Shown here piece after piece: positions 23,501 through 58,700 of a stretch of DNA of 64,000 nucleotides. A program made the translations under genes and the position numbers. The DNA is taken from assembly GCA_904063045.1 (NCBI GenBank), contig CAJFCJ010000043.1, positions 107,501 through 171,500 on the forward strand, written 5' to 3'. How positions within the stretch are numbered: the first letter of the stretch is position 1; each line of letters opens with the position of its first letter. This DNA is from Dimorphilus gyrociliatus (Eukaryota; Animalia; Annelida). The notes under the pieces were generated by a model. The model had not been told where the DNA came from and ran no database searches. It saw nothing but the letters and a program-made list of their open reading frames with translations.

Positions 23501-23937
23501 TTAGAAACTGAGTTATATGAATTAGTGGATACAATAATACAGACCTTTGAGGCAGTCCTCATGAAAAACATGTTTACATAAACAATATGTCTTATTCATT
23601 TGGTTTGAAAAAATCATTTGTTTGCAGTATAAGCATTTGGAAGCCATTTGTTGGATAGAAATGTATCAAAATTCCCTTTTAATTTTTTAAATGAAGAATA
23701 TATCTATGCTGATTATGTAGACAAACAAAAAACATGAAAAAATTCAATATTTACCAACAATTTTAACAAAATGTTGTCAAAATCAGTATTATAACATTTT
23801 ACATTTATATATAATATACAATATAATATTAACAATTTAATTAATCACAAAAAATCAATGATAAATACTAAAGTGACTTACCTCAAATTGAGTGATATTT
23901 AAAAAGGAAGTAAATTTTACTGCCTTCTTCTCTGAAG

Positions 23938-24413: not shown

Positions 24414-24439
24414 TTTATGGAAAATGTAGGAAAGGAAAT

Positions 24440-24770
24440 ACATTTCCTCAGCTTGTCAGTTCAGTTCTTTAACCATTAACTGGTTGTTTAAACTTACTTG
24501 TTTAGAACTAGAAACTCATTTACTCAATACATATTCTTTGGACGAAATACTGGTATTTTGTTGAATTATTTCTACGGAAATTACATTTGTTAAGACTATT
24601 TGCGGACGAACTTGAAAGGTTCTATAATTGATAAATGATTGGAAAGGACAAATACTGTTCTGAAGAAGCAGAAATTCCTACAATTACAATACAACAAAGT
24701 GCACCCATTCAACATAAAATTTCTACAATTACAATAGAACAAAGTACACCTCTTCTTATTCAATAAGCCT
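24440..24770 (+). repeat. Family X copy (distal part)
   Basis: Shares gtttagaactagaaactcatttactcaatacatattctttggac and ttcctacaattacaatacaacaaagt with 8660-8885 and 10100-10320. Confidence 0.85.
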
Positions 24771-31839: not shown

Positions 31840-32286
31840 ATGCCTAGTAGTAATCAAGTTTTGAATTCTACTAATTCAACAACAGTTGTAGTTGGTCAAC
31901 CATTATCGAATGAACATAAAATTATAAAGATATTGCCTCAAGGTAGAAATAATGCAAATATTAAATTTAAAGCTGTTGGTGATACTATGGTACATGTGAA
32001 TAAATTTTTTTTTAATCATATTAATGTTTCTAATTATGCTTTTTTTTTCTTTCTTTCTTTATAGAGATTGAGTATAACTTCGGCAATATGCTGTTTCTGC
32101 TGCATCTGCTTTGGAATTTTATCAATATACAACAGTTTAAAAAGTAGAGAATCAAAACGAATTGGTAATACTGAAGAAGGTATTAGAAGGGCAAGATATG
32201 CAATTGTTTGTTCTTTTATAGCTATAGTAGGAGGCTTAATTGTTTCTTTTACATGCCTTATGGCAACATTACCTCTAGTGGTATAA
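31840..32286 (+). CDS. CD225/dispanin family (IFITM/PRRT-like) membrane protein, ~123 aa
   Basis: Exon 31840-31989, phase-0 intron 31990-32064, exon 32065-32286. GDTM|RLSITSAICCFCCICFGILSIYNSLKSRE..RIGN.EEG.R.ARYAIVCSFIAIVGG matches the CD225 pattern. Confidence 0.85.
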
Positions 32287-32599: not shown

Positions 32600-33782
32600 C
32601 ACTTGCTTGTAAAATTTTCAACTGTTGAAAATCTTTGGAAAATTGTTAAACTGTTTTGAAGGAGTCTACACTTAGCCTAAAAACAATTGAAAATTATTGG
32701 AAGTTATTTTCTGATTGAAAAAGACCAGTTAAAGGTTGTTACAACATGTTTTAGAAATATAGGCAAAAAGTTTCAGGACATTGTAAAATCATTCGAAGAG
32801 TATTTGAAAATATTTTAAATGGCTGACAAACTAAATAAATAGGTGATAGAAGAAATCATAGAGCTTGCAGAAAATTTCAATGGAAGATATCTGTACAAGT
32901 CTTTCAAAATCTTTAAATACTTTGAAACAAATCAAATTTATAAAATGTTCTCTAAAGGAAGAAAATTGCAAAATTTTAGGAAATTTCTTAAAGAATAGTT
33001 ACAAAATAGAAACAATTAATCTTCAAGGGAATAGAGAGATGGGAAAAGGAGTAGAGAATATTTGTGTAGGACTTTTACAATCATCAAAAAATTTGAAACA
33101 TATCTATTGTGATTGTTGTCAATTAAATGAAAAACAATGCGAATCTATAGGAAATCTTTTGAATAATTGCTGTAAACTTGAAACAATAAGTCTAACTGAG
33201 AATTTTGTAATGGGAATAGGATTATCAAATATTTTTAGAGGATTATGTCAAGCGTCAAAGACTTTAAAATATCTCAATTTGAAGTCATGTTCTTTAGAAG
33301 AGGAACAGTGTGAATTGTTTGGAGAATTACTGAAAAACTGTTCAAACATTGAAACATTACATCTTGAAGAAAATCATGGAATTGCTGATGGAATCCATAA
33401 TGTTTGTAAAGGACTTATTCAATCAACAAATAAATTAAGACATTTGTTTTTTGGATGGTGTTATTTAAATGAAAATCAGTGTAAATCTGTGGGAAATCTG
33501 TTGAAATTCACCAAAATTGAAACATTACACCTAGAAGGAATTAACCAGATGAAAAATGGATTATCCGATATTAATAAAGTTCTATTTCAATCATCGTACA
33601 GTTTAAAACATATCTATTTTGGTAATTGTAATTTAGATTTAAAATTATGCAAATCAATTTGGAATTTGTTGAAAGATTGTTATAAAATAGAAACAATCAA
33701 TATAAATGGTAATAGGCAAATGGGAAATGGATTACAATATATTTGTGAAAGCCTTATTCTATCTTCAAATAATTTAAATAGA
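32600..33782 (+). pseudogene. Intronless RI-type LRR paralog of 2858-4486; 5' decayed, 3' truncated by family X
   Basis: ORF 32865-33815 has the same ~28-aa repeats (LKHIYxxxCxLxExQCxSIGNLL..C.KIETI.L..N..MG.G). The upstream LRR-like sequence has stops, and the terminal RASSSSTSISK* is family X sequence. Confidence 0.7.
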
Positions 33783-33940
33783 GCCTCAAGTTCGTCCACA
33801 AGTATCAGCAAATGAATGATATTTGTCCAAAGTTTTATATCGAACTTTTAACAAAATGCCAGTATTTTCCAAATAAGATATGTATTGAATATTCTGAGGT
33901 TTTATCTTTAAGCAAGCAGTTAGAAAACTAAGCTAGCAAC

Positions 33941-36083
33941 AGGTTATGGAATGAACATCCCATGGAAAGAATGTCCCATTTTTAAAAGAATACATCTATT
34001 TGAAAGAAAAATTTAATATTTAAAAAATGTATTATTTCTTTCAAAAGATATTTATACTTTTCAATGATGTAATGAGTAATCATTGTATCCACACAACAAA
34101 ACTGGAATACTCCATTTTGGAAAATTCACTGAAGTAGTAATTTTTGGAAATTTCTCTAAATTAAAAAAGATAGGATTATTTTGTTTGAAAAAGAGATAAG
34201 GTAATTATTAAATATTAATAAGGAATTGAAAAGATTTATTTTATGTGTTTTTCACAATTGGCTAAGTTAAAAACACTTTTTTTTATTATATCTTTAATTG
34301 AACTTCCTCTTTATAGACAATGGATGCCTCTTGTTATCAATGTAAGAAAAGGATATATGGAAAGAGATCTGTACATAAATGTTCAGTATGTAATCATACA
34401 TATTCCATGCATTTTAAGTGCACCAAAGGTTTGTATAAAATTTATTTGAAATAAGGGAGGAAGCAAGAAAGGAAAAGATATTCTACTCTATAATGGATTT
34501 GCATTCAATGTAAAGTTTATGAAAGACAGCTATACCTTATGGAGATGCAGTGTTCATAATAAAAAGAAAATATGTCCTGCTACAATTAAACAAAAGGGTT
34601 CAACATTTATTGAAAGCACAATGGAACATTGTCATAGAAAAAAAATAGATGGAAATGGAAATCAAAACAAGAACAGACTTGAGAGAAATATGTTTAACTG
34701 ATTTAAAGTCATCAGGAAAAGTTATTGCTGAAACTGTACTGTTGGACTACAGCAAAAAAGTTGAACAACTTCCTAAACTGGAAAATTTACAGTGCCTAGC
34801 TAATTTGACAAGACAAAAGATTTGCCCAATTGAACCACAAACATTAAATTTTGATCTAAATATGGCATTTATACCAGATGGTTTCCTTCAACGAGATTTC
34901 TATAATGAAAAGGAAAGAATAGTAATGTTTGCATCAATGAAGCAATTGGAATTGCTAGCAAAGAGCAAGGTATGGTATATGGATGGAACTTTGAAAGTGG
35001 CAAAACAACCTTTTTACCAACTATTTTCAATACATTCATTCATTAAAAAACATGGTGAAGTGAAACAAGTACCACTTATGTTTGTGTTTATATCATCAGC
35101 AAAGTCAAGAGCTTACAAATATGTATTAAAGGTATAAAATGACTGATGATTCAATGCCAGAGGAGGTAGTTGTTGATTTTGAAAAAGGACTCTGGAAAGC
35201 TCTGAAATCTATTTATCCAGCAGTATCCATAAGAGGGTGTGCATTTCATTGGAGCCAAGCTGTGTATAGAAAGATTCAGGTAAGATGAATATGTTAATTT
35301 TGCTACAGTTTAGCTTTTATTATCTATATTTTTAGAATTTGGGATACAGTATAGATTATCAATCAAACATGAATAATGGAAGGTCAACATTAAAAAAGAT
35401 ATTAGCATTGCCATTTCTTCCTTCTACTACAACACCAACAGTCTTCAATTTAATTGCAAATGGTATGGGAGCAAGAAACAAATATGCTGATTTGTTACAT
35501 TATGTTCAATCTCAATGGATTGAAAATTCAATTTGGCAACCTCAATAATGGTCTGTGTTTGGTTATAGTGTCAGAACAAATAATGAAGTTGAAGCTTGGT
35601 ACAGAAGATTGAACAGTAAAGTCTTGGCCAAAGGCTCTTTTTACCAATTGGTAGATGAACTAAATAAGGAAGCTTCTCTTATTGATGTTTATAAAAACTT
35701 TTATCTGAGAGAAAGTTGAAGAAACACCAAAAGAAAGAATATATGAAATTACAGGTTGAAATATTCAAATTATGGGATAATTATGATTTAGGATTAATAA
35801 CAGCAATATATCTATTGGAAAAAGTATCAAATATATATGTATCATAACTTGCATATTAACCTCTCTTGTCTAGCCCTGTAGTTTAATTCTTGATATTTTT
35901 GGTGTAACTAATGTTGTTCATAAATCTTTAACTAAAGATTCAGTGGTTTCTTACTTAAATACATTTTATATTGTAAAACTTTTTCTCTGCTAAATTCTTT
36001 TCATAGAATAGTATTTTCACATTGTCTTGTGTCATTCTATAGAACTACTTCCTTTTTAATATGGGACATTCTTTCCAGCTCCC
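33941..36083 (+). mobile_element. FLYWCH-MULE element E, complete ends, internally deleted and defective
   Basis: Perfect 9-bp TSD GCTAGCAAC at 33932-33940 and 36084-36092. The ~22-bp imperfect TIRs have the core TGGAAAGAATGTCCCA. Motifs: DGTLK, VVDFEKG, GCAFHWSQAVYRKIQ|, TNNEVEAW. It contains stops and frameshifts. Confidence 0.95.
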
Positions 36084-36175
36084 GCTAGCAACTGTTAAAT
36101 TCGTAGGGTTTATATACTTTCCTAAGAGTTTAACAGTTCACAATTTCAAAGTTTGAACAATGCAAAGTAGTATTG

Positions 36176-39100
36176 AAACTGATTCTACACTTAAACCAAA
36201 GTATGAAATCTCTCAATTAAGAATGGTTTTCAGACAGTTTTATGGTCCGAATCATCCAGTTAATGGTGGTTATTTTTCTGGAGATAATTGTCAATCATAT
36301 CTAAAGTTCAACTTTGGTAGGATAGTCAAAATGAAAAGAATAAAGATAGAAGGTGCTGGAAGATCAGGAGATTCATGGATAAAATACTTTTATATATATA
36401 TGAGCAACAATTCAGATTCACTGGACACTGTACGAACAATGGATGGAAGTCGTCATGTAATGTCTTTTGAATTTCAAAAAAAAAAGAAAAATAATAATTT
36501 ATTTAATACTTTTCTGTTTTGTTTCTTTTTAGAAATTTCGTGGAAATTTCAACAAAATAACAGTTACTCAAAATTCATTTAATCCTCCAATAATAGCTCA
36601 ATACTTGAAATTTTTGTCAGAATCTTGCGAAAAAGCATTCTCTGTTCGATTGGAAATTTATGGTTGTAATATAACTAAAACATACATTGATCGTACAAAA
36701 CCTCTTGGTTTAACAAATTTTTATATATTACATTCTCAAATGATAAATAGAGAATTGGACAATTTGGAATATGGAATACATGAGATTAGGCTTAGTTGTG
36801 AATCAGATTTTCAAAATAGAGGCTATTACTTTGCCAAATCAATGTGGCAGTTTGATCTTGGAATAAAGCATAATATAGTGAAAATTTTTTTGCGAGGTTC
36901 CTGCGTATCTGAGAATCACATGAAGAGTTTTCAGGTAAAATATACTGATGATCCTTTGAAATGGTTTGATGATAAGGCAGCAAATGGACAAATTAGAAAG
37001 TATTTTGCTCAAGATAAAAATATCCTCTCAGAAGTACAATTTTATGAGACAATTACTGCTCGTTACATAAGATTTACACCATTTAGTGCTGCTGCAGATA
37101 TTAGAATGGAATTGTATGGCTATCCCTGGGAACATCCGAAATTGATGAAAACCAAAAAATTCCCTAAAACAACTACTGCATCATCAGAGAAAAGTTCAAT
37201 TAATTCTCCTGAAATGGCATTAAATACAAAACAAACATTTTGGTGTAAAGAAGACAATGATTTAAATGGTTGGTGGTCAGCTGATCTAGGCTTAATATAC
37301 TACATAGAGAGGATTATCATTTTCTATAGAGAAAACCTGTCGAGAGATGTTTGTAGTGATATTTCAGTGTTTGGATCTCAGAATAATGGAACAAATTTAA
37401 TAAAAGTAGATCAGGTAAGAATTTTTGACAAATTTTAGATTGATTTCTTACTAGAAACAATAATTTTGCTACTGTTGAACAAAAGGAAATAGCATGTTCA
37501 TTTGAAGATAATCAGACAGCAATCTATTCATCACCAGCCTTACGGTTTAGATATATTCGTCTAGACTTTAAAAATGGACCAAAAGAATGCATTAGATTTG
37601 AATTATATGGTAAAAAAGCACCAATATGTCCTCCAGGCTCTCTAAGACATTTAGACAAGTGTTACATGATTTCTGAAATGGTAACATCATTTGAGAAGGC
37701 CTTAAAATTCTGTCAATCAGGATTTTATTGGAAAAGTGAAGGTTTTCTTGTAATGCCAAAGAATACATTTGAAACAGATTTTGTTAAAAGACATTATAAA
37801 TTACAGTAAATATACTTTTTTTATATAAATTTTTCATTTTAAAATTTATTAAACTAATAATTGAAAACCTTAATAGAAAGCTAAATCATGGAATTTACAT
37901 TGGTGTTAAGCAAATTTCATTAAATAACTTTGTCTGGCTGGATGGAACACCTGTAACAAACTATTTACTTTTTGAAAGCAACTTCTCTCCACATATTTCC
38001 TATCCTTGCTTAATAAGGAGAGATTTCTTTAAGAAGAGTAAATGTCAGGAAAATGGTTACGCAATGTGTGAAACAAAAGCAAACTGTTAGATTCTTTTTC
38101 CCTTCTTATATTTATTTTTTTCAATATTATCTATATTCATTAAACAGTACCAGATAATTTGGATGATTTTAATGATGAAGAGAAATGTCAGCCTACATGG
38201 TTTCTAATGCCACATCATAGGTTGGACATTCAACTTTCCATTGGTGTTCTCGATGTAACAAGTATGGGAAATTGTTTAGCCTATTGTCTGTCTCACAAGA
38301 CTTGTAAGTCAGTCAGTTGGAGATATAGGTAAATAAAAATTGACACAAAGTAGGCTTAATTTTACAAATGATGAGAGATAATTGTTCATAGGTATAGAAT
38401 TCTATCAGAGTGTTATATTTACAATATTACAAGATCAGCACTGAAATATGATAATACAAAATTTACTAAAATATCCAATGAGTTCCATTATTTCGAGCAT
38501 TTCTGTTTAGATAGAAAAATTTCAAAACTTTTACCAGAAGGAAATTTTGAACAAGATGAAAATTTCAATGTAACTGTAACATCCTACAAAACTTATAATA
38601 ACAATTATCGTGATTATCGTCTGGGTTTGTCTATAACTCATTATTACTGTGCACTTTGCAAGCAAACTATACAGTGCTATCTGGAAGTGAATTTTGAAAG
38701 ATTAGTTCAATTGGTAGTATTTACAACATCTGCAAGATACGGAAGCTATACCGAGTATACAAAGACAGCACATTTCTTTTATAAAAGAACTTCATATGAC
38801 CAATGGTTAATTGTTCGAGATGGAGATGGAGATGTTATTGTAAATATAATAAAATAATACATTTTCAAACAATTTATTCTCATTTTATATTCTCTTAACA
38901 GAATTATTCTCTACAAGAAGATAAACACTATTATAATCATAATGAATTTCCTCCTAATCTCTTTTGTAGAGGTGTTAGATTCAATCCAACAACTTATCAT
39001 TCTTATGCCTCACTAATCCTTCAATTATATGGAAGATATATTGAGGAATATGAACATTCACTTTATACTCCAAAATGCAATCATCCACTGGGACTGGAGA

Positions 39101-42100
39101 ATATGAATCGAATACATAGTTCTCAAATAACTTCTCCATCCTTTCTTAATTCTTACCATCCATATAATGTAAGATTAGATTGCCCAAGCTGTTGGATCAC
39201 TAATTCTCCAGAACCAAATGATTACATAGAGATAGATTTAGGTTATATCTATCACATTACAGGTTTTGTTTCTCAAACCTGTAAAAATCAGGAAATTTAT
39301 ATCCTTGAATTTGCTGTTGAATATTCATTATATAGAATTCATGGTTGGCAATTTTACAAAAATGTAAAAAAAAAAATTTTTTTTTATTCGAAAGAAATTT
39401 TTATTTTTTCTTTTTTATTTGTTTTTTCTTTTAATAGAAACTGCTTGTTCGAAATGATTTCAAATTGATAACAAACACGAAAAATCTATTGCTTTTTAAT
39501 GAAACTCTAGAAATGAGATTTATTAGAATTTCAGGGAAAACTTGGGAAGATAAGAGAGGATTACGCTTGGAACTTATTGGATGCATAAAACGTAAAACTT
39601 TATTACTTATTTTTTTTACAAAATTTCTTGTTGTAAAATAATAAACTTTTTTTCTCATTAAGAGCATGACACAATAACCCAAAGTTCCAATGATTACCTG
39701 GAACAAATTATTATTGAAGAAACCACTCTTGGCAATGTTTTATCATTGGACAAGGTCAATGAAACTTCTACTTTATCTTGCCTGGACAATTGGCTATTGC
39801 AACCAAATAAAATAACTATAAACTTTCAAAGAGTTTACAGTATTACAGGATTTGTCATTCTTTCAAATGTAACAAACAATTTGAACTTTACAATAGAATA
39901 TTCATTTGATCTGGTAAACTGGTATACTTATACTTATGGATTCGATTACAAACAATTAAATGTATAATAAGAAATTTTTCTAATATTTTCTTTTTACCTA
40001 TAACTTTGCATTTGTCTTCCATTTTTAGTCAACTCATCATATTCTCTTATCTAATCCAATTTTGACTGTTTATTTATCATTGACTATTCAAAGCACAAAT
40101 CAATATACTTGCTTAAAAATTCATATTAATGGTAAAAAACATTCAGGTATGATTATGAAGGTTTTGAATTTGATACAAAATATTTTATTTAAAAATATCT
40201 ACTTCTTCACAATGTCCTCCAGGATACTTCCTCTTCAACACAAAATGTATTTCCTATCCTTATTCTGTACCCTTCTCATACGATGAAGCTGTTGAACAAT
40301 GCCAAGGTATACCATGGAGAGGTCAAGGACGAATAATTTCACCAAAAAATGATGAAGTTCTAAATGTATTTCTACAAGGATTTTTCAAAAAGTAATTCAA
40401 TCACCTAGGTTGAATTTTTTTAAAATGAAATATTTATAAATAGAAATACACTAAAGACACGTTTAGGATTGAGGAAAATTAGTGGTAAATTCACTTGGCA
40501 AGATGGTAGTCTTCTACCTACAGATGAGGTGACAAAGTGGGATGATTCAAGCACATCTGGCTACTGTGTTGGTTTTAAACCAACTAATGGATTTTGGATA
40601 AAACTATCTTGTAGTAGTGATTTTCTCTTTTCATGTGAAAAGAATGCTGGTATATAAGAAATTTTGTTTTGCTTTTAAAAGAATCTAACCGAATTTTTTA
40701 TAGTTCTATCACCTGAACAAAGAGTTGGTAAATTATGGGAAGTAATTGAATCAGCTATATTAATAACAGCCAGTAGTAATAGTATTATTTACAAAAATGA
40801 CTACAATACAAGATTTGATTGTTTGATGGCTTGTAATGAAGAAATAAGATTAACCTGCATTTCCTTTACCTTTGATACAGCTAGCAAAGACTGTATTCTC
40901 TATTCTGCAAACACTTATACTAAAAATTCTTACCTGAGAATGAATGTCACTGATGTTGATAAGATATATTTTCAAGCTTTCAATCCTGGTAGAATATAAG
41001 ATTAAGAAAGTCTCTAACATTACTTGTTTTGTTTTTTCCTCAGGTAAATGTTCAGCTAGTCTTGTTGAACAGAAATCTTTAGGAATAAACTGGAATGTTT
41101 CTTCCAATTATGATTTATCAAGGGATGCAAGTAAATTACCTCTATATATAAGAGAGGGTTCTTTTGGTTACTGGAGACCTGATGATGCTGATTTAAAACC
41201 ATGGATTCATTTCAATTTTGATGCTGCTGTAACAATATCATATTTCATTTTGCAAGGAACAGGAAAGTTGAGTGACGAAGGATACATAAAATCCTTTTTC
41301 ATAGAATCTGCTTTAGATGGTATCAAATATGAAAATGTCTCATGGGACTACAATGGTGAGAATGTTTTTGATGGACCATTAGATCATATCAGTACAAGAT
41401 TTTATAGATTTCAATCTTCATTCAAGACAAAATCTATCAAATTTAACCTTTTGGAGAAGAGTTTATATTTTGCTATGAATATTGAATTGTATGGTTGCAC
41501 TGACTATATTCCAGACTGTTTTTCCCTAACATCTTCAGATTTTGAAGTTAGAGGAGCTGATAAAATGGCAAAATTAAAATGTTTTGAAGATTGGACTGTC
41601 CTTGGTCAAAAGTTAATGTCAAATGATTCTTGGGAAAAAAGTTGGTTTGATTACAAAAATGGATTCGAAAGTAGTAACCAATTCTGGGCTGGTAATCAAC
41701 TAGCAACCTACTTGACAACTTTCAGAGAGTACAACTGTAGAATTGACCTTTGGACAAAAGATGGAAAACACAGACACAGCGAATTTAAAACAATTCTTTT
41801 TCAATCAGAAATCGAATTCTATACTAGAAGTGTATTGAAATTTTTGAGTGGTAGCTCACCATCCAGTAAATTTTTAGAACCTGCAAAATTTTTTGCAATT
41901 GATAGTGATAATGAAAGATCTTGTGCACAAAATACCCAAACTGGTTGGTGGTTTTTAAATGACAGTTGTTTATCAACAAATTTATTAGCTTCCAATTCAA
42001 TTTGGCCAATTGATCAAACGGATTTGTTCAATGCTTACAATTTTAAAGTGGAAAAATTTCTTTTTAAAATAAAATCAAATAATTCTTGTAAGATAGTCAA

Positions 42101-45100
42101 ATTTTTCATTTAAAAAAAAATCTATTCTCTTTTTTATTATCTATTAATTTATCTAGATAATATTGCTATTGGCAAACATGCTTTTCAAAAGAAAACTGAG
42201 GGCGAAAATGTAGCTAATTTGGCAATTGATGGCATCATTTTATCTGATGCTACTCAAGGATATTGTGCAGTTGGAGAACATACAACTGATCCTTGGTGGG
42301 TAGTCAATTTATTCAAATCTTTCAGAGTATTGGGAATAGCAGTAACAAACAGGAAAGATTGCTGTTGTAAGTTTAAACCGAAAAACAATCTATGAACAAA
42401 CATTTTTCTATCCCAACTGTCCATTCAGCTTCAGAACTCTCAAACTTTAGAATTGGATTGGCAAACAGTTTTTCTGTTACAAACTTTGATTCTTCCTTAT
42501 TTCAACTATGTAAACATTACACTGGAACAATTGGATCTGGCATTACAGAAGAGATAGTATGTGATAATGGGCCAATCATAGGATCTTACCTTGGCATTTG
42601 GATGATTGGAGCAAATCTTAGATTAAGCTTATGTGAAGTTGAAATTAATAGTGAATTAAAATATGGTGAGTATAATTTTTCCCACCATAATAGGGTCACA
42701 TTGAAAGCTGCAGGAGTTGAGAGGTGAATACTCTCTAACTGGCTGGGGTTGATACTTTTATTCTATTTTACTCTGTTAAGAAGAAGTATAGCTAGTATAA
42801 AACTTTTCACAGTGGCCTTTGAAGAAACTGTATACATATATATATTATGAGATAATGTTTATATTAACCAGGTTCAAATAGGATTTATGGAGAATCTTGT
42901 GAATCAGATTCAAATTGTGTTGAACCCTATACATCTTGCCTTCCACAGAATGAACCACAGAATCTCAATGTCTTATTATATTCTTGTCAGTGTAGTGTCT
43001 ACACAATTCGTAAAGACAACATATGCTATAAAGGTAAGTGAGGAATGGAATGGTGTACAATTTCAAACAGTCTAAAACAGTTTCTTATTTCAAAAAAAAA
43101 ATACACAGCTACAGATATTTCATTGAAGCTGATTGATATAGATACGAAATTTATCAGAGAAGAGGAAAGCAATATTCCATTAAGAATTACATTGCAGAAT
43201 TTAGCTGGATGGCCAATTGCTGAAACTACTTTACCAAATACAAACTTTGACTTTACAGCATCACTTTCGGATTCAGATAGCATTGCCAGTGCAAAATTTA
43301 TAAAAAATATATCCTTAGCTTCAAAATCAGGCCTTGAAAAGCAACTACTCAGTAGAGATATAACAAATTCTTCTAAACGGGGTGAAACAGTTTTGAGTCT
43401 GACAGTTACAATGAAATTCCCAATTCATCAATGTTTTAATGAGAGTTTTTTCTGTGGAAATATTTTACAATCTTCAACTAGTGATTATTTAGAATATGAC
43501 AAATCAAATAATGAAAAATGTGTATCAATGTCATCGCTAGTAAATTGTCAACCTGATATAGATTTATCAATATCCAAGATAACACTTAGTTCCGAAGAAT
43601 TTATCTATAGAAGTATCAGTCAAAATCATACTTTTATTATTACTATACTAAACAAACATTCCAATTCTCATGATGTTATACAATTATTTGATACTTTCTA
43701 TAATTATGACATTGAAAGTCTGATTTCAAACAAAACTCATCAAATCAACAGTAAAAATCAAAATTGGCAAAAGTCTAAATTGGATTTAAAAGAAAAGCAG
43801 AAAGGGATTAAAGTTGGTAATACTTTGGATTTGTCAATGAAAATTTTAACACATCTTTCAAGATTTGAATGTGAAGATGATTTATTTGTTTGTTTTCGAA
43901 TTGTTCCATCAAATTTTTCATCATTTAAAGAGATTAATAGAACAGATGATATTTTATGTTTAGATATGGATAAATACAAGAATTGTACACCAGGTAAATA
44001 ATTTCACTTCAAAATAGTTTACTGACTATACTATTTTATCTTTATCTATTCAAATTAGCTATCAGAATCAAGGCAAACATTACTATTCCAAGACAAACTG
44101 TAATAAGAGGTTATAATCAGTATTTACAAACATTTTTGCAATGGACAAACATTGATGAGAAGTTCAGCATTGATTCAGTTCCAATGAACAGATACAACTT
44201 TAATTTCACTGTATTTTTCACCAATGTCAATTTGCAAAGTAATCATTCAAAACCACACTTCTATAGATTTTTGAATTCATCTAGTATTCAGTCAAATCTA
44301 TCTATAAATCAGGAGTTGATGTGGAAATTTATGCATAGGATATATATTCCAAGAACTCAATGCTCAGAGTATAAATTTCTCTGTTTCAAGGTCAGTCCTG
44401 GTGAGGGATCATCATATTCTCTATTTCCTGATGGAAATAGCACATCTTGTACAGATATGGAAACTGTTATAAACTGCATTGGTCTGAAAATAAATGGTCT
44501 TCACTTTGAAATTTCAAACAACAATCTGACTGAAGGCAGTTCCAGTCAATTTTCAGTAGTATGGAGTCAGGGAACAGATGTAAATTATAGAATAAACTTT
44601 ACTGAAATGAATTCAGTATCATGGAATTGGCTTAATGCCAGTCATACAGAATCATTTGGACCAATTAGTAAACATTACTTGGACTTTTTGTACAATAGCT
44701 ATGGCACATACAATGTTACTTTAACAGCATGGAATGAGGTGGCAAGTCAAATACTTTGGCTAGTTAAAGTTGTTGAACCAATACTTGGAAATCATGTTAG
44801 CTTTAAGAGTGACTATGTTCCAAATGAACCACCTTTGCAGGTCTTATGGAAGATTGAATATCAATATCAAACTAATGTGATGACAAAAGATATATCAATG
44901 ACTTGCTTTATTGACACTGGTCACAATGAAACTTTGACCAAAACTGTCATTCTCAACTATGCAAATCTATTGGTCATTGATTATATTTATTCAAAGGATG
45001 AATTAAAAGCAGAAGCAACAATTACTTGTAATAATTCTATATCAAATGTTAAAAGTAATCAAGTATTTTTACTTCAGCAAAATGTAACAGATTTAAAAGT

Positions 45101-48100
45101 GAAATTCAATCATATTCATTGGCCATCATTCAAAAATTTATCACTTGAAATAACCATGAAAAATGGAAGTGATGTTGAATATGAAATTTTGTTTGGTGAT
45201 GATTCAAAAGAGATTTTCAAGAATCCTGAACTTTTTGCAAATGGAAAAGCATTTTATGCAATTCATTCCTATTCTCTTCCAGGTGAATATCAAGCATTTG
45301 TTAGAGCAAGAAATGAATTTTTCAATGACATGGCCTTGACACTTCAACCTATCATCATTCAGAATGAAGTGAAAAAAATTAATTTAACAATTTCCTATGA
45401 AAAACCTAGAAAAGTGAACTTAACTATTAAAGAGATAGACAATGAATTGAATCCAACAAATGTATCATGTTTATTTCAACCTGATGATAATCAACACATA
45501 ATATTTCATAATGTTGATATCAGAAATGGTACAACTCTTATTCATGAATATTCAGAAGTGTTCAATGAAAGGGAGAAGAGAAATTTAACAGTAAAAGCCT
45601 TCTGCTTTAATCAAGTTTCCAATGCATCATTTACCCAAAATTTCATTTTGGAAGAACTAATTTCACAATTGAATGTTTCAATCAATAATTTGTTTTTATC
45701 TACTTTTGAACTGTTCACAATAAACATCACAACTCTTACTGGCACAAATATGAACTTGACATTTGATTTAGGAGAAAATGAAATTTACAATTTCCAAGTA
45801 AAAGGTCCTGGTATGAATTCAATTCCATTCAATTTCACCTACAAGAATCCAGGAGTATTTTGGTTAAAGATAAAGGTGCTTAATTCTGTCAATACCCTTA
45901 CTAGTCAACACCTATTAACAGTTCAAAATAGAATTGTTAATGCAACTTTCTTCTTAATTTATATAGAACCCAGAACAATACTGACTAGTGTCAGGCAATA
46001 TTTTCCATTAATTCTACCTACAAATGTTACCTGTTCAATTGATATTAGCTGGAAAGCTACAATTGTTCATGAACATCAGAATTTATTATTAGGAAGTTTG
46101 GGAAATTTTTTACTGGATGAGATTTATAACCAAAGAAAATTCAAACATTTCAATTTTACTACAAAGTGTTTTAATTTAATTTCGAGTGTTGATTTTTTTC
46201 AAAATGTTACATTTAGAGAAAAAATCACTGATTTGAACTTTTATATTGATAAAGCTGTTGTAAAAGTTAATGAAACTGTTAATTTTACAATTACAACTGC
46301 AACTGGTGACAATATTACGCTGGAACTGGACTATGGAGATGGAAATTCTTTTAGTAGATGGATGACACCGGATCGTATAATAAAAAGCTTAACATATGAA
46401 TATAAAATAGCTGGAAATTATAGTGCAAATGCTATTATGAAGAACAGTGTCAATCAGTTATCTTTCACCATAACTCCAAAGATAATTGTTCAAGTACCAA
46501 TCTTTGAATATACAATTAAGGCACAGTACATTGGAAGTTTAGATGAACAGCCACTAAACTTTTCAATTAGTGTTAACAAAGATTTACTTGCTCCTACAGA
46601 TGTTTTCTGTTTCTTTCAACCAAAGTTGAATGAAGTGAATAGTAAATTTTTCTATCAACCAGAATTGACAAGTTTAAAATCATTGACTTTTAGTCATTAT
46701 TATTTAAAAGATGATATTGGAAGAAATATTTCAGTAAATATAACATGTAAAAATCTTGTTAGTGAATTTGAAAAAATTTTTAATGTAACAATTTTTGAGA
46801 AAATAAGAATTTTACAGTTGAAACTTAACAAATTGGCTTATATGAGAATGGAAAGTGTACCTTTAGAGATAACAGTTCGAAATGGTTCGTCTGTTATCTA
46901 TACAATCTATCAACAGACATTGTCTATTATAAGGGAGAGACACCCAAATTTATTTGCTACTGATCAATCATTAATCAGTTCTTTGGAATTTTCAAATATT
47001 GGAAATTATTCTGTAACAGTTGTTGCAGAAAATGAAGTAAGCAAAGAAAATGAAACAATTACAGTGATCATTCAGAACAAGATTGAAAATATTTCTCTTG
47101 AAGCAAACAAATCAATATTATGGACACCAGGAGTTATTTCATATAGGCTTTATTCTGAATCTACTCAAGACATTCTTAAAGATGTTCACTGCTCTTTTAA
47201 TTTTGGTAATGGTATGTCTTCAGAGAAATTTATACCAGTTTGGCTACCATTTACATCATTTGCATATGATTTTTACTTTCCAAGAACTGCTATTGGCAAT
47301 TTAACAACCAATCTGGTTTGTAGCAATTTACTATCAAACAAACAGCTGAATACAACAACAGAAATTATTTTGGATGCTGTAATACTAGAAGATATAAGGG
47401 ATAATGGAACTGTCCTATTGACTAATCAAACAACTATTATAACTGAAATTAAAAGAATGGGTACAAATTCCTGTTTTATCTTTGATCTTGGTGATAAAAA
47501 TTCAACAAAATTAGCATTTGGAGTTAATGATATTTGCAGAGATTATGCATCTGATAGACTGATAACTTTTACCAAAATTCCATATCAACAAAATATCATA
47601 ATTTTCAATCATATTTATGAAGAGATAGCTTACTACAATGTCAAAGTTCATGCTTTCAATCATATTACAAATGATGAGAAGACTGTTAGAACACGTGTTC
47701 TTGATTGGTATTGCTATAGTCCAAATGCATCTGTACCAACTGAATACACTTTTCCAGATAAACCACAAAGGTTGATGAAAAGTATACAATTTGAAATACC
47801 AGTAAACATCAGTTGGGATTGCATGAAAACTGATAAAGTAATATACCAATGGAAAGTCTTTCAGTTACCAACAAATTCTCTGACATTTCAATCAACTAAT
47901 AAAACTTTGCAAATAAAAGAAAGACAACTTGAATATGGCAGTTATAGAGTGGAATTTTTCATATATATGCTCAACAATCTGGATGCAAATAATGCATATG
48001 AATACTTTTTTGAAATTATACCAACTCCACTACATGCAGAAATTCTAAATGGAAATTGGACTAATGTCGAATATGATATCAACCACACTGTCAATGCCCA

Positions 48101-51100
48101 AATACTCAGCTATGATCCTGATAATGATATTGATGATAAATTGAAAGGTATTACTTTTCAATGGCATTGTAGAAGAGAAGATGAACAATTATCTTCATCC
48201 TCAAACATTGTGAAGAAAGGAACAAATTTACAAGATGTTCCACCAACTCTAAAAGAATTCAAAGACAATGGTGGATGTTTTGGAAATGGTCCAGGTTATA
48301 TTGATAATGAATCTAAAGGCATATTAACTGTCAATACTTATTACATGATACCAAATACAACATATGTTTTAACTGTAAAAGTTCTATCAGACATTGGAAA
48401 TAGAGAATCAACTTTTGAGCAGGTTCTTTATTTGAAATTGACCTCCAAACCACTACTAAAATTAAAGTAAATTCTTTTCTGTATAATGTTTCATTTTAAC
48501 TTTTTTTTACCAATTTTTTTAGATGTGAAAAGAATTGTTTAGACAAAGCTGGACTTTCATCATCAACAATTTATCAAGTGGTATGTTTGTCAAAGTGTTC
48601 TAGTTTGTACTGGAAAATTGTCTATAATTGGAAAGTGTTTGTCAATTTGAACGAAACATGGACTATTGTTAATGATTTACATGATAGAGTTATTGGAAAT
48701 TTATCCTGGAGTATGATTGAAATCAAGGAACAATCACTTATTCCTGGAACTTATCATAATTTAGTTGCTGAGGGTAGAATGGAAGAAATTGGTGGTGAAA
48801 CAGGCTTTTCAAATATGACTTTCCTTGTAAATAAACTACCATCAGGTGGAAAGTGTTATTGTAAACCTAATGCTGGTTTTGCATCAATTACCAATTTTGA
48901 GATAAATTGTCCAGGTTGGAAAGAATTTGAAAAGGCTATTGATTCACCAGGTTTAAATTATCGATATAGAGCTAGGCCTAAAGGAGCAAAGACAAGTCTT
49001 CTTTTGTATTTTTCATTCCAGGAAGAGCCTGTCTATGTTATGTTACCTGTTGGCGATCCAAGAAACCAGATAACTGAAGCACTAGTCACTATAATTGATT
49101 CTGTTGGTGATTCTTTTGATTTTATGTTTGAAGTTCAGGTTCAACCACCCCCAGAACCTGAGGAAAAGTTGCTAGATCTGGTTATAGATGTTGTTTCGGG
49201 TGGGCTTTTAAATCAACAATTAAAGAATGGTAACTACACTCAAGTGTCATCTACTATTTATTCAGTTGCATCAATACTCAATGCAAATCTTAATAAATCA
49301 TTAGAGAAGACAAATAATGAAACAGAAAATGAAATAGCTCAAAATGCATGTGAAAAGAGAATAAAGAGAATAAAGGCAAGAAAACAAATGATTGATTATT
49401 CTGTAAATGTTCCTTTTAAATCAGTTGATGAAATGGAACAAAATAATGAATTGATTAATTCTCTAGTATACAAACCAAAAGAAGTAGACATTGGATCACA
49501 GGTATTAAAACTCATTAAAAAGTAAAAATTCCAATCACATTCTCTTCCTTTCCAGATGATTGTCACTGATCAAATAGGCAAGCTAAACAATGTCTTAAAT
49601 ACAGAACAAGTCCCACCAAAACTGAAGAAACAAATATCAATAAGTATGAGAATTGATAGAGTAAATGATGAAACAAATAAACATTTCTTTTACAAAACTA
49701 GGCCTTCTAGAAACCTGTATACTTACAACTACAGCTGCTGACGCCTATAAAGAAGATGCAGAAAAAGAGGAACAATACAAACTTGAAAAAAATAATACAA
49801 AGTTTTTTTGTGACATCATTTCCAAAACTAGAAATCTAACAACAATACTCAATACCACAAATAATAGCAGGCAATCTTTGAATACAACTAGTGGAAAATT
49901 GGAAAATGTTATGACAAAAGTTATTGGAGTTATCAACAATGTTACTGATGAATTGCTATTTGAACAAAAAGAGGATGAACCAGCATTGAACATTGAATTT
50001 GAACAGATGAGTATCAATATTGAGAAAGCATCTATTAATAGAGTGAAGGAAAGCAGTTACAATTCAACTTTGGTTAGTAGAATTGAACTCTTTTGACAGT
50101 GAAAATAATTCATGTGTGACTAAAAGATTAATCATGTCCAGTATTAATCCATATATGTGGGACAAGTCAGCAAACAATGTAACATCAACAGTAACTGAAT
50201 TTATTGTTCAACCTTGTAATGAATTAACAAAAACAGCCACCAGAAAGAAAAGAAGTATTCATGAACAATCTACAACCAACTTTTCCTTAACTCTGAACAT
50301 GAAGAACAAGGGCCAAGATGTTCAGTATGTAAACACAACCAAAAAATCAGCCATCCACATACTTAATGCAACAAAGAATATCCTGCTACTCAGTTTTAAC
50401 CTAAAACCTACAGATGTGATATCAGTTCTGATTGGTTTTGACAAGAGACCAGTTAATGATCTGAATAATGGATCTTTTATTGTTCCAAATTTAAACAAGA
50501 CCTGTTCTACAAATCTTAACCAAAATGATTGTGATGAATATAAAAGAACAATTATGATTAAACCCAGTCAAAATCATAAAATCATGGTTGTTGTCTACTG
50601 TTCAAACTGTTCAGATAAACTACTCAATTATAGTTTAAAAATTGCTTACCCATCATGCAAAGTATGGAGGGATGATAGTTGGAAAGAAGATGACAATTCC
50701 TGTAAAATTGACAAACAAACAACAGTCACCAAAGCAAGATTTACAAGTAATCTATTTGGAAGTTTAGGAGCTGGACTAGATCTTGCACCAAATCTTATAG
50801 ATTTTGATACAGTATTTGATGACTTTGCTAGTAAACTGGCTGATAATGCAGCAGTATTTGGAACAGTTTGTTCACTATTTGCCCTCTTTATTCCTTTGGC
50901 AATATTGGTACGAAAATTAGACAAAAAGGATCAATTTCTGTGGACACCAATGCCATTGTTGGACAATTATGAAGAAGATAAACATGAATATGAAGTACAT
51001 ATCCACACTGGGAGTAAAAAGGATGCTGGCACTCAGTGTAGAGTTAATTTAACATGTTATGGGAGCCTTTGCAACACTGGTAATCGAGTTCTAGCTTCCA

Positions 51101-53893
51101 GCAGAGTTGTAACTTTTGATGCAGGAACAGTTAGGTCATTTCTAATGAAAACAAACTGCAATATTGGATCAATAGTTTGTATAAAAGTATCTCTTGAAAG
51201 AATGCCTTTTGCACTGGAAGAGTATGATCCTTGGTATTTATCAAGAGTAGTAATTGTTGATAAAGCTGAGAATATTTGGTATAATTTTGACTGTGAAAGG
51301 TGGTTATCTCCTTTTCATGCAGATTGCGAAACTGAAAGAGTTCTTCTTGCAACTAGGCACACAAATCAACCTCATGTAGATCAATTGTTTAAAAGGAATA
51401 TTAAAAGAAAGTTGACTGATGATCATTTATGGATATCAGTTGGAGCTAGGAGAACAAAATCCAAATTCACAAGACTTCAACGTTTGTCAGTTTGCTTTGT
51501 TGCTCTTTTCCTGTCTATGATTGCCAGTTGTATGTTTTATAAAAATTCTGGAGAATCTAAAGCTCAAGTTGGATTGACATTTGGTCCAGTTACATTTACT
51601 GTTTATGAATTGTATGTAGGATTTGTTAGCAGTATCATTATATTCCCTGGCTTGGTTGTAATAACTCTACTATTCAATTCTAAAAGATGGAGAAAATTTA
51701 CTATTCCATTGGCATGGACAATCACTTTTCTTACAGCAGTTGCAGCTGCATTCTTCACAATATTATATTCTATCCAATGGGGTAAAGATAAATCCTTAAA
51801 GTGGTACTGTCATTCTTCCTATCTTTTATACAAAGTGTCATTCTTGTTCAGCCTGTAAAAGTCATTCTTGTTGCAGTTTTACTAACATTTTTGTTCAAAA
51901 AAGATTCAGATCTTAGTGAATATGAAGAAGAAATTGGAGATATGAAGAAGTTGGAAACAGAAGATTTATCTCACATTCCTAAAGGTAAGTGAAAAAAAGC
52001 TATTTTTTTTGTTTTTGTATTCAGATTTATAATTTTTTTTTTAATAAACAAAAAAAACAGAATTAAATATTCATCAAAGACTAAAAACAGCATCAGAAGA
52101 ATGCCATGCCTCAAAAACTGACAAACATCTTGAGAATAAAATGCATAATATGCTTAAGAATATTACTCTTCATGCAATCTATCTAATCTTTATCATCTTT
52201 ATATGCTATAGCAATCAAAATCCAATAACTTATTATCAGAATAGGTCAATTTACAAATTGATACCAAATCTTCAAAAAGTAAAAGACTATGACAATTTCT
52301 GGAAATGGCTAAAAACTGATGCTCTACCACAACTTTATCCAAAGACATATTATAATAAAATGAATCTTTCTATTTATGATCAAAAACATACAAGTGAATT
52401 GAATCATATGAGATTCTCACCTGTCAGACTCTTTCAAACCAGAGTAAAAGAACAAAAATGCAAAACTATTACAAATTTTCAAAAATTGTTTTCTAATCAT
52501 AGCTGTTTTGGATTTTATTCAGCAACTAATCGACTTGAAAAGAATTTCTCTACTCATTGGGCTGACTTTAATGTCAATGATACACACAATGCATTTATAT
52601 ATTCAGTTAAAGACCAAGGCTATTCAATTTCATTGGGTCAGAAGGCCGATAATGCCCATGAAATTCTAGATGAATTGAAAAAATATGGTTGGCTGGACCG
52701 TCAAACCCATCTGATCAAATTGGAGTTCACAATTCTAAATCAGGAGACAGTTTGCCAGGCATCTTGGAAATTTGAATTTAAAATAATAGGAGGAATAATA
52801 ATAAAGGTTCGAAGTGACTCCTTACAACTTTATAGATACACAGGAGTGGGTGGTTTAGTTTCCCTTATCTTTGAAATATGTTCTCTGTTAATATGGATTT
52901 TCTTGGTTATTCGATGTCTGTACAACTTTATCAAGCATTCAGAAATTCCTGGTTTACTCTCACTGCTCTCCTATATATGTTTCATATGGTCCATTGGTCT
53001 TTATATCTGGAGAACAATTATTGGACTAAAAGCAGTAGAGAATGTAATGAATTCCAAATATGAATATGTAGATATGTCATTATTTTTTAATGCTCATGAA
53101 TACTTTATGATATGCATTGGATTTTGTGGTTTTTTCGGTATGATTCATATATTGACCATGCTGAAAATCTCCAGAACAATTTCAGTTCTTGTAAGTACCT
53201 TATTAAAATCCAGGAAAGAATTAATGGCAATAGGAGTTTGCTGTTGTATTGTTTTTATTGGCTATGCCAGTTGCGGTTACATTATTCTTGGCACAAATAC
53301 AGAAAATTATAAAAGTTTCAAACACACATGCTTTGCATTAATTGTCACCATTTTTGGACATTTGGACTTTGAAGTATTATCTGCTACAGCAGGCTCTCTG
53401 GGTAAAGTTTATATTACATCCTATGCATCTATAATGACATATCTCATCTTGAATATTTTTATAACAACTTTAAATGAATTTTTGACTGCTGTTAAACTTG
53501 ATCCAACTGTACTACCTGAAGATCATAAAGTATTCAAATATATTATCAACCAATTTAAGAAAGTCTTTTCCAAAGATGATCAATCAGAGAAAAGGCTTAA
53601 AGAATTTGATAACACAAAATTTAAAGGTTTGTCCTTATTCTATTTTTTAAAAAATTCTTTAAATTCTGAAAATTTTTGTAGCACTACACAAAAAAATAAA
53701 TGATTTGGATCAGATTACCTCTATGTTAGAATCCTCCATAGATTTTGAATTGTTTGATATGGTAATGACTAGCTATGTTTGGCAGTCGGTAAAGCAATCT
53801 GATAAAAAAGTGGCCAGTGATCACATTGGTCAAGATAGTGAGCAGCTAGAAAACGAATTGATCAATATTTTTGCAAATGTAAGAAACAAATAA
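36176..53893 (+). CDS. Polycystin-1-like (PKD1/REJ family) receptor-channel with a multi-lectin ectodomain, ~24 exons, ~5,300 aa; no 5' exon found and two frameshifts
   Basis: Most introns are phase-consistent (one near 37415-37490 is ambiguous). Seven F5/8C-like domains (e.g. RLEIYGC, MELYGY, IELYGC), two CTL, two PAN, FReD (WFDYKNGF..FWAGN..GWWF), fucolectin (DPWWVVNL..TNRKDCC..LSLCEVE), EB, a 4.4-kb PKD-repeat/REJ exon 44060-48467, GPS, TM1 (RKLDKKD), PLAT (YEVHIHTG..AGT), FTRLQRLSVC and a channel domain. Stop at 53891-53893. Frameshifts at 50091-50094 and 51803-51804. Confidence 0.9.
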
Positions 53894-55751: not shown

Positions 55752-58700
55752 GGTGCAGTGACATTTCGGCCCAGGACAGTTTGGCCCACTTTTGGACATT
55801 TTGGCCCATTTGGGACATTTTGGCCCATTTTATGACTTTTTGAGTTAATTATGAATTAAATACAAGGAATAAGAAAAAGCAAATCAATTTTAAAATTAAT
55901 AAAAAATATAATAAGTAATATAATATAGTAATTCCAGATATAAAATATTTTCAGAATAATGGATACCAGTTTTCCTTATTTCTCAAGTATATTTTACATT
56001 GCTTTACAATTTCCTTTTCCTGTTTTAAGAAAAAGTAGAAACCATATTTCTTTTCTTCATTTATCATAGAAGCTTAAATAGAAATTACAACATGAATTTG
56101 AAAAACTGTTGGAAGTGTGGATTAAGATTTCATTGGACACAAAGAAAATTCAGATGCAAGTTGTGCAGACATTTTTATCATACAAAGTGTTCAAAATGTA
56201 AGTAAACTCTTTAACTTTCTCAGGTATAATGCTATATCACCTATATATTAAGATGCAGTTTATTGTCCTGATTGTCATGATGTCAGGAAACAAAAATTAT
56301 TTATTAAATTTAAGAAAATAGATAATTATTGTCAGAGTAAAATTCATCCAGAATATGATGAAACTGTTGTTAATTTATAATCATCAATGAATAATACAAG
56401 TGAAATGAATACAAATCAGGTAATTTCATTTGTTCAAAGATATTATTATTTCACCATAAATTTTAACAGTTAAGACTTTCCTTTGACTTCAATTCACCTG
56501 AATCACCAAACAATGAAAAAGAGTTGAACTTTCCTGAAGATGGACAAGACATGGCAAAGAGAGTTGATATAAGTGATGAAACTTCATTTGAGATGGATAA
56601 GCAGTATAACATCATGGAAACAGAAAGAGATGATTTCAAAATAGTTATAGGTGGAAGTACAAAAAATAAAGACTTACTTCTACACAAAAACTGTTCATAT
56701 TCTGTAAAAAGAAAAACTGAAAGTTCAATCACCTGGAGATGTACTCAGAGATATGCCAAAGCTCCTTGTCCTGCATACATATTACAAAAGGGATCAAAGT
56801 TCATTGTAAAAAATGAAAATCATCTTCATAAATTGCATAAAAACATAGAAAGTGTTCTTCAATCAAGAATGGACTTGAAAGAAATGGCAACTGGTGACAA
56901 TGGAAAAACTGGTAAAAGAATAGCAGAAGATATTATCCTTAAATTTAAAGATAGTATTGAAGACTTGCCAGAACTAGAATCATTAAGAAGAAAAGCTTCT
57001 AGATATAAAGAGAGTAAAAGACCAAAGCATCCAAGACATTTAGATTTTGAAATAAATCTGGATGAAATTCCATTTGATTTCTTATTGAGAGATATGAAAG
57101 AAAAGAAAAAGCATTGTATTATATTTGGCACAAATCATCAAATAGAATTACTGGAATGTTGTAAAATTTGGTTCATTGATGCAACTTTTAAACTTGACAG
57201 AGATCCATTTTATCAGCTGTTTTCAATTCATGGATTCTTGAAAAAACATGATGAATATCAACAGGTTCCATTGGTCTATGTTCTGATGAGTAGCAAGAAG
57301 AAAAGCTCTTATATTGCTGTATTTCAGGTTTGAGATATTTCAGTATTTTAATCACTTTTAATTTATCATTTTTCATTTGAAAATAGGAGATAAGAAAATT
57401 AATCAATGATAAAACTCCCAGAAAATGTGTGCTTGATTTTGAAAAGGCTATATGGATGGCACTTAAAGAGCAATTTCCCAATTATGACCTTCAAGGATGC
57501 TCTTTTCATTTGAAACAAGCAGTTTTGAGGAACATTCAGGTAGATTAAACAATCATATAAAGAAAATAATTAAATACTTATTTTATTAGAAACTTGGATA
57601 CATTACTGATTATAAAGAAAATGGGTACAAAGGAAAAATGTTACAAAAATTAATGTGTTTGGCATATCTGCCTTCAAATTTTATTGAACAAAAGTTTGTC
57701 CAACTAAGAGAAGAACTTTGTGAAAAGAAATTGTTTACAGATTTGCTTGAATATATAGAAGTAACATTCATTAAAAGCAGTACTTGGCCTCCTCAATTCT
57801 GGTCTGTTTATCAATTAATTGTGAGAACAAACAATCATGTTGAGGCATGGCATTCCAGACTCAACAAAAATTTGAAAATGGATGAGAACTTTTATTCTCT
57901 AATAAAAGAATTGAAAAGAGAAGCTGAATTAGTAGAGATCTTTGAAAAGTTATTGTCTGAAAAAAGTTGAGAAAAATACAGAAGAAAAAGTATAAAGATT
58001 TAGAATTTAAAATATTACAGTTGTGGAGTAAATTTGAAGAAAGAGAATTGAGTTTGGATGAATTATTGGATAGACTTGTTGATTTAAATATCTGTTAAAA
58101 TTTGTTATTTCTTGTTCTGCTTTTTAGTTATTAAACTTAACACTCCTTACTATTTGTAAATTGTTTTTTATATTAAAAAAAATAAACATAATTGTTCACA
58201 AAATAAAAATTATATTTGTCATATTTATCAATTCATAAGTACTAAACCTATCTTCAAGTGAGACACAATGCCTTTAGTATGGATGCAACAGAAAATGTCC
58301 ATGAAAGAAAACATCCATAAACCAAAAGAAAATGTCCATGAACTGAAAGAAAATGTCCATAAAGTGAAAGAAAATGTCCATAAGCTGAAAGCAAACATCC
58401 ATGAATCAAAAGAACACATAAAGTAAAGAAACTTTTTTTTAAATATAAATACATGTTGAAAAACAAATTAACACAAAACTTTAAGAAAACTGGTAGAGAT
58501 GAAGAAATCTTCAGGAAAAGAGATAAAAAATATCAACTTCCTCTTCTATTTTCACTCTCTTGAGGTAATATGAAAATTTTAATTTTTAGAGGTTTTTTTT
58601 GTTCTTATTAATCTTTGTGATTAAAAACTTTTTGATTATTTTATTAATAATCAATCTAACATAAATTTAGCAATTTTATTTGTTAATGAAGTTTTTTTTC

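Follow-up and report, generated by a model that had tools for sequence, protein, structure and literature searches.

Proteins of the polycystin-1 family act as receptor-like partners of TRPP channels, and few of their natural ligands are known. The described members of the polycystin-1/REJ family carry one or two lectin modules each (PMC1934368, PMC2120838). The ectodomain of human polycystin-1 (PKD1, here PC1) contains LRR, WSC, one C-type lectin and LDL-A domains, and PKD1L3 and PKD1L2 bear lectin modules at their N-termini (PMC1934368). The sea urchin proteins SpREJ1-10 are PKD1-family members from a lineage-specific expansion and bear C-type lectin domains, EGF and a SUEL lectin; one of them, REJ1, serves on sperm as a receptor that binds glycans (PMC1934368, PMC2120838). 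Among annelids, the polycystins PKD1-1 and PKD2-1 of Platynereis act in ciliated mechanosensory neurons (PMC6294549). In this study we analysed a stretch of 64,000 nucleotides (nt) from the annelid Dimorphilus gyrociliatus (contig CAJFCJ010000043.1, positions 107,501 to 171,500; hereafter the window), which holds a polycystin-1-like gene with a large array of lectin-type domains. The gene in the window is a further, apparently unannotated and shortened member of a family that has already been deposited but is without a published description. The window thus adds one copy and no new kind of protein, as the layout is already public in the form of unnamed predictions.

The coding unit lies at 36160-53893 on the plus strand and comprises 26 exons with about 5,309 codons in our own splice-aware model (Table 1). 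Its introns, all GT-AG, range in length over 43-158 nt around a median of 67. AT-rich overall (about 30% G+C), the window presents on its plus strand, from 36.1 to 53.9 kb, a succession of long open frames separated by short gaps. Because one open exon of 1,469 codons has a chance probability of about 4e-55 at the base composition of the window, a chance origin of the coding signal is excluded. The gene finder was a small one, trained on the long exons. When the splice matrices were retrained without a stiff intron penalty, the long exons were broken into spurious pieces, and the penalised model was retained. Homology-guided refinement of the junctions was skewed to long introns and was applied at one junction only, with an implausible 33-nt intron discarded for a canonical 75-nt intron at 43034-43108. 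The resulting model is collinear, with no gaps, with residues 833-5711 of DgyrCDS14890, an annotated D. gyrociliatus protein. All 26 exons stay in frame, and the same domain order is seen again in five further loci or models, which represent at least two species. Judged from these sequences, the lectin array, the PKD/REJ region and the polycystin body are one coding unit.

The ectodomain begins with two cassettes, each of three F5/8C domains, a C-type lectin-like domain and a PAN domain, and continues with a seventh F5/8C, a fibrinogen-C domain, an F-type lectin and a six-cysteine module. This is exactly the order given by the original prediction, which had been made from the letters alone; Pfam and our family profiles together support it and the duplication of the five-domain cassette, and the sole reservation concerns the naming of the last module. 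The profiles, iterated from the window's own domains across the family, place seven F5/8C domains, two C-type lectins, and one each of PAN, fibrinogen-related, F-type lectin and cysteine module. The PAN domain of cassette 1 comes from Pfam only (23.2 bits against a cut-off of 21.4), and the counterpart of the cassette 1 C-type lectin in the paralogue DgyrCDS14777 scores 28.1 bits with Pfam Lectin_C. Matches were also obtained among solved structures in the PDB. The F5/8C sequence also matches the factor VIII C domains, and the fibrinogen-related domain (Pfam Fibrinogen_C E 4.3e-13) matches ficolin-1 (9e-13), angiopoietins and tachylectin-5A, overall at E 1e-12 to 3e-9. The call of a fucolectin was borne out: the exon at 42159-42365 matches FBP32 (3cqo) at E 5e-16 and eel agglutinin (1k12) at 2e-7. 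The two halves of this domain match FBP32 at E 5e-16 and 6e-3 over consecutive parts of the fold, and the F-type lectin domain of a paralogue reaches E 5.7e-28 against solved F-type lectins. The call of an EB domain for the six-cysteine module did not reach the Pfam threshold (12.9-13.7 bits against a gathering score of 24.3), although EB was still the top Pfam match, below threshold, for this module both in the window copy and in two of three paralogues that were compared.

Between this array and the PKD repeats lies a linker specific to the family. It has no Pfam match; an AlphaFold2 model of it was all-beta with a mean pLDDT of 68.6, and its Foldseek matches were tandem Ig/FnIII-like sandwiches, generic and with low TM-scores. 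The identity of the remainder as a polycystin-1/REJ-type protein, also claimed originally, holds in both Pfam and structure matches: PKD repeats, REJ, a PLAT domain after the first transmembrane segment (TM1), the polycystin (TOP) domain and a TRPP-like set of six last transmembrane segments. The PLAT exon aligns with the human polycystin-1 chain 6a70_B at E 1.4e-20, and the window copy also matches the chain 7d7e_A of the PKD1L3-PKD2L1 complex at E 6e-10. The channel half (Pfam Polycystin_dom E 5.5e-20, PKD_channel E 9.7e-24) finds its best solved relatives in PKD2L1 and PKD2, which align over S1-S6 of the channel exon at E 1e-30 to 1e-26, better than PKD1L3. A hydropathy scan gave nine transmembrane peaks and the pore helix, and for TM5 and S6 we relied on visual inspection of the sequence and alignment. 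The membrane body fits the 11-TM layout, so that four lectin-type classes and PAN precede an 11-TM body with a TRPP-like channel half, as had been proposed. In the selectivity filter, LGD of PKD2L1 aligns as FGH, whereas the Asp that follows and the S6 segment are both retained. The GPS region is degenerate, and on sequence grounds no GPS cleavage is predicted. The motif C-x-C-x-H-x-T/S was not found in the four family proteins scanned for it (cB, P0005, P0155, P0007), neither the Cys pair nor HL|T could be read by eye at the corresponding position of the window copy, and Pfam GPS was present neither in the window exon nor in the precomputed lists of three public paralogues.

Table 1. Features of the lectin-polycystin gene and of the transposon remnant before it (positions in the window)
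Feature	Position	Strand	Basis
Exons 1-6	36160-36429, 36533-37414, 37486-37805, 37877-38085, 38148-38328, 38434-38839	+	Gene model
Exons 7-12	38902-39363, 39438-39591, 39663-39961, 40029-40146, 40223-40391, 40444-40649	+	Gene model
Exons 13-18	40704-40988, 41044-42087, 42157-42366, 42429-42723 (or -42669), 42882-43033, 43109-43993	+	Gene model
Exons 19-26	44059-48466, 48523-49501, 49556-49643, 49702-50010, 50054-51781, 51862-51984, 52091-53626, 53682-53893	+	Gene model
Cassette 1, F5/8C x3	36268-36664, 36821-37120, 37235-37611	+	PF00754/PF22633; family profile E 1e-22 to 6e-25
Cassette 1, C-type lectin-like domain	37633-38075 (intron 37806-37876 inside)	+	Family profile E 2e-43
Cassette 1, PAN/Apple	38148-38328, runs on into next exon	+	PAN_1 E 6.1e-5
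Cassette 2, F5/8C x3	38639-39033, 39187-39581, 39791-40133	+	Pfam; family profile E 1e-16 to 1e-28
Cassette 2, C-type lectin-like domain	40143-40642	+	Lectin_C E 8e-7; family profile E 5.5e-47
Cassette 2, PAN/Apple	40760-40930	+	PAN_1 E 2.9e-9, above cut-off
Seventh F5/8C and fibrinogen-related domain	41166-41495 and 41532-42077 (single exon)	+	Pfam
F-type lectin (fucolectin/FTP) domain	42159-42676 (intron 42367-42428 inside)	+	Matches to FBP32 (3cqo)
Six-cysteine EGF/EB-like module	42886-43029	+	Kept in 6 of 6 relatives
Frames with Pfam F5/8C	36157-36579; 36533-37435 (two); 38899-39465; 39662-39964 (weak); 40944-42110 (one)	+	Pfam
Frames with Pfam PAN	38144-38329; 40679-40996	+	Pfam
Frame with Pfam Lectin_C	40424-40654	+	Pfam
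Frame with Pfam Fibrinogen_C	Within 40944-42110	+	Pfam
Weak F5/8C/NedA-like match	42114-42392	+	Pfam
Family-specific linker, about three beta-sandwich modules	43109-44483	+	Family profile
PKD repeats, then REJ domain	44484-49300	+	Pfam PKD E 8.6e-32, REJ E 1.2e-23
Degenerate GPS region, TM1, PLAT, TM2-TM5	50054-51984	+	Pfam; motif and hydropathy scan
TM1	50836-50892	+	
PLAT, directly after TM1	About 50989-51345	+	Pfam E 1.6e-15
TM6, polycystin (TOP) domain, 6-TM TRPP-like channel half, C-terminal tail	52091-53893	+	Pfam
Pore loop of channel half	53329-53385	+	
Degenerate MULE transposon remnant	34243-35850	+	Broken, frameshifted frames

The architecture had not been recognised as one already described. 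However, an identical layout is already public in three D. gyrociliatus models, DgyrCDS14777, DgyrCDS14890 and DgyrCDS14438, which have the same Pfam content and, by the family profiles, the same order. These models of 5,543, 5,744 and 6,071 residues are unnamed predictions (UniProt A0A7I8WEU8, A0A7I8WDL7). A HMMER search of the full database with the PLAT exon returned those of 5,543 and 6,071 residues as the best long matches, and a further search returned that of 5,744. Two more loci, from another sequencing project, share the layout. In Logan, the big PKD exon matches two frames, with identities of 41% and 36%, whose contigs carry the same series from the lectin exons through the channel. 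The identity of the window copy, taken across more than 5,000 residues, is about 50% with DgyrCDS14777 and DgyrCDS14890 and about 39% with DgyrCDS14438. In the tree it is sister to DgyrCDS14890 and DgyrCDS14777 in a 100/100 clade, and DgyrCDS14438 falls in the same clade. From the second cassette of these relatives to the C-terminus the domain order is identical, whereas these models extend 740-900 residues further towards the N-terminus, with PAN, two or three F5/8C, a C-type lectin and PAN; across all relatives the extension amounts to 740-920 residues. Our literature search found no paper describing this dinophilid family. Its 14-20 lectin-type modules, set on a channel-like body, make it an extreme case of the modular ectodomain of the polycystin-1 family.

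Elsewhere in the family, the contig L004 of a relative carries at 156-1718 the end of another polycystin gene (Polycystin_dom and PKD_channel), about 2 kb upstream of a lectin-polycystin gene, and the family is therefore tandemly arrayed there. In a DNA sequencing run (X1), searched with the window at 38900-44899, the window sequence occurs exactly, together with contigs that share 85-95% identity with it and show small indels at 42714, 43029 and 43099. The latter contigs represent a divergent haplotype or else a very close paralogue.

The window copy starts where the second cassette of its relatives starts, and its homology to them ends at 36160-36169. In a contig of a relative (cA), the matching point falls inside an exon in our model of that contig. 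No exon homologous to the first cassette of the relatives occurs elsewhere in the window, including the 36 kb upstream. A clear signal peptide stands at the start of DgyrCDS14777 and of a second contig of a relative (cB), with hydrophobicities of 3.35 and 2.81 against 0.36 for the N-terminus of the window model. A scan for a signal-peptide exon near 36160 yielded no credible exon or strong acceptor, and the chance frames that appeared would require introns of more than 1.9 kb. About 300 bases separate the upstream end of this homology from the end of the degenerate MULE remnant before it; the Pfam MULE match of the remnant at 35130-35285 is sub-threshold (23.0 bits against a cut-off of 27.6). 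We looked for a protein model of the locus in three length ranges that together span 794-9,700 residues, and none turned up. RNA runs were searched for as well and none was listed; an unlisted run may nevertheless exist. We suggest, at about an even chance, that the window copy is a recently 5'-truncated duplicate whose frames are still intact. Because it is without the signal peptide and the first cassette of its relatives, such a copy may not make a working receptor; its ectodomain would probably no longer reach the outside of the cell. If this is true, the window shows a family that duplication, cassette loss and transposons continue to reshape.

Several observations weigh against a truncated duplicate. 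In a genome of 30% G+C the reading frames have stayed open over about 5,309 codons, the branch of the window copy does not exceed those of its annotated sisters in length (0.31 against 0.32), and 16 of the 40 listed differences from the contigs of about 90% identity are synonymous, against 0.20 expected. Taken together, the open frames, the branch length and the synonymous excess suggest that selection acted until very recently or still acts. It is also possible that the assembly was mis-joined at the 5' junction, at 35.85-36.16 kb; the family lies on short scaffolds, and exact look-ups of two window frames in public assemblies gave no match. The annotated DgyrCDS14890 and DgyrCDS14438 are likewise without a visible signal peptide, which shows that 5' ends in the lectin-polycystin family are hard to model.

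The same observations speak for an intact working gene, whose true 5' end (a signal-peptide exon and perhaps the whole first cassette) was missed or mis-assembled, and so does the retention of all conserved Cys and core residues in the alignments. In that case either the missed end would be so short or so diverged as to escape recognition, or a wrong join would lie in the assembly at the transposon remnant, and the product would act like the full-length members, possibly with a shorter antenna. However, no trace of a first cassette was seen upstream even though the introns of this gene are all short, and neither the scan for a first exon and acceptor, the protein models nor the search for RNA runs spoke for such an end. 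We consider a working gene a serious possibility that falls somewhat short of an even chance, and we continue to prefer the truncated duplicate for this copy.

A full-length member would be a membrane protein with an outer antenna of about 4,300 residues, if solved polycystin complexes are a guide. By analogy with the PC1-PC2 and PKD1L3-PKD2L1 complexes it may pair with PKD2-type subunits, and binding to the antenna or pulling on it may modulate the cation channel. The original prediction had gone further and regarded the protein as a glycan-gated sensory, gamete or immune receptor, in which the binding of sugar opens the channel. There is something to be said for this. Four lectin-type folds are present, the channel half is near the pore-forming PKD2L1 and PKD2, and a relative, sea urchin REJ1, binds egg-jelly glycans on sperm (PMC2120838, PMC1934368).

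However, the term glycan-gated found no support in the residues concerned. The calcium-dependent sugar site of C-type lectins consists of EPN or QPD plus WND, and the fucose site of F-type lectins, as in eel agglutinin and FBP32, consists of one His and two Arg. In our alignments EPN/QPD and WND occur in neither C-type lectin domain of the window copy, nor in those of its relatives. In the F-type lectin, the His of CTHT is replaced by Val and the last Arg of R-x-D-C-C-x-x-R by Glu, and the triad is reduced to its first Arg, one residue of three, in the window copy and all relatives. In addition, F5/8C and fibrinogen-related domains often have lipids, collagen or acetyl groups as ligands instead of glycans, and FGH stands in place of LGD in the selectivity filter of the window copy. 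We therefore hold a glycan-gated receptor to be unlikely. Because the known sugar-binding residues of two lectin classes are gone, our preferred guess is that the antenna is more likely a multivalent adhesive or tethering array than a classical sugar reader, as far as its sequence can tell.

A bolder reading, which we regard as improbable and offer very tentatively, is that the dinophilid family, the window copy included, forms a set of sensors with a variable antenna and a constant channel. If so, paralogues with differing numbers of lectin/discoidin cassettes would bind different polyvalent surfaces (mate or egg coats, mucus, microbes), binding to the antenna would directly gate the TRPP channel, and the shorter antenna of the window copy would be a functional variant expressed from an unrecognised first exon. 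D. gyrociliatus is a small culturable annelid with a compact genome, and could be a place to ask what the antenna binds.

The argument for a single coding unit is comparative, because no RNA run was listed and the contigs that match the window exactly are DNA-like and unspliced. Single frames in cA run through PAN, F5/8C and fibrinogen-C, supporting the join 40988|41044, and from the linker into the PKD repeats, supporting 43993|44059. The latter is the exact form of a join originally placed at 43995-44059, which was thus right. A single frame in cB holds the second half of the F-type lectin and the cysteine module, supporting a join from 42669 or 42723 to 42882. The join proposed here at 42666-42872 was near the mark and out of frame as written; the in-frame solution takes either of these two donors with the acceptor at 42882. 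The joins between fibrinogen-C and F-type lectin and between cysteine module and linker contain introns in every locus examined, and they rest on the conserved order and the public gene models. A division into two separate head-to-tail genes, one with the lectin exons (36.2-43 kb) and one with the polycystin body (43-54 kb), could appeal to these two joins, which no intron-free relative bridges, but it is already close to refuted and very improbable, for between the two parts there is neither a stop codon nor a start with a signal peptide, the frames continue over short canonical introns, the adjacent joins are bridged in relatives, the order and spacing recur in the five other loci or models, and three public gene models join the parts.

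A contig of 3,101 nt from another run (X2, record 12), of unidentified library type, is collinear with the window at 41466-43902. It is without 337 nt and 75 nt at the places where introns of 289 nt and of 33 nt (in the discarded model) were predicted; both residuals are multiples of three, and the second becomes zero under the adopted 75-nt intron. This contig could be a spliced transcript of a close paralogue.

The surroundings of the gene contain further elements. Three apparent copies of MULE-type transposons flank it, the remnant at 34243-35850 and two downstream copies at 56029-58095 and 58286-61459, which were called from similar reading frames only; the last has terminal inverted repeats of 21-nt tandem units. 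An exon for a CD225/interferon-induced-transmembrane-like domain lies at 32065-32283 (Pfam E 1.8e-9). Between this CD225 gene and the transposon remnant sits a frame of 317 codons (32862-33812, plus strand) with five repeats of 171 nt (57 residues) of the ribonuclease-inhibitor/NLR type of leucine-rich repeat (LRR), for which the Pfam LRR matches are sub-threshold. Further upstream, an unrelated frame at 23892-24476 on the plus strand gives a weak F5/8C-like signal (E 0.013).

Compared with the known systems, the window copy shares with human polycystin-1 (structure 6a70 of the PC1-PC2 complex) the PKD repeats, REJ, TM1, PLAT and the 11-TM layout. It differs in having about 14 lectin-type modules and in being without HL|T, at which the GPS of PC1 is cleaved, and its channel half is nearer to PKD2-type pores than that of PC1. 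PKD1L3 and PKD1L2 are likewise polycystin-1-like, with six channel-like last transmembrane segments, and join PKD2-type subunits; they carry a single C-type lectin, accompanied or not by one SUEL lectin, and are without F5/8C, fibrinogen-C, F-type lectin and PAN. The sea urchin REJ proteins, with their one or two lectin modules, have ectodomains much shorter than those of the window family, and no lectin array has been reported for Platynereis PKD1-1 and PKD2-1. Among more distant matches, the Rhopilema esculentum protein P0156 (5,805 residues) has 16 F-type-lectin-like domains together with Gal_lectin and VWA, and no polycystin body.

The combination of several lectin classes on one polycystin-1-like body, which had been taken as new, already exists in predictions from amphioxus and a crinoid. 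We compared the 150 best representatives, including Branchiostoma lanceolatum 'PKD1L3' A0A8K0A8R5, Branchiostoma XP_078659501.1 and XP_078669286.1 and Antedon XP_071965421.1. The amphioxus predictions combine two F-type lectins with fibrinogen-C and a C-type lectin, or F5/8C with a C-type lectin and PAN, or LCCL with F5/8C, Xlink, Trefoil, a C-type lectin and PAN; the crinoid prediction has WSC, PKD and three to four F5/8C domains. The three amphioxus models have a recognisable GPS, unlike the window family. In the tree, the amphioxus and crinoid models lie outside the dinophilid clade. They have 2,000-4,100 residues and carry their domains in other orders and as single copies, whereas the dinophilid proteins, to which the window copy belongs, are built from repeated cassettes.

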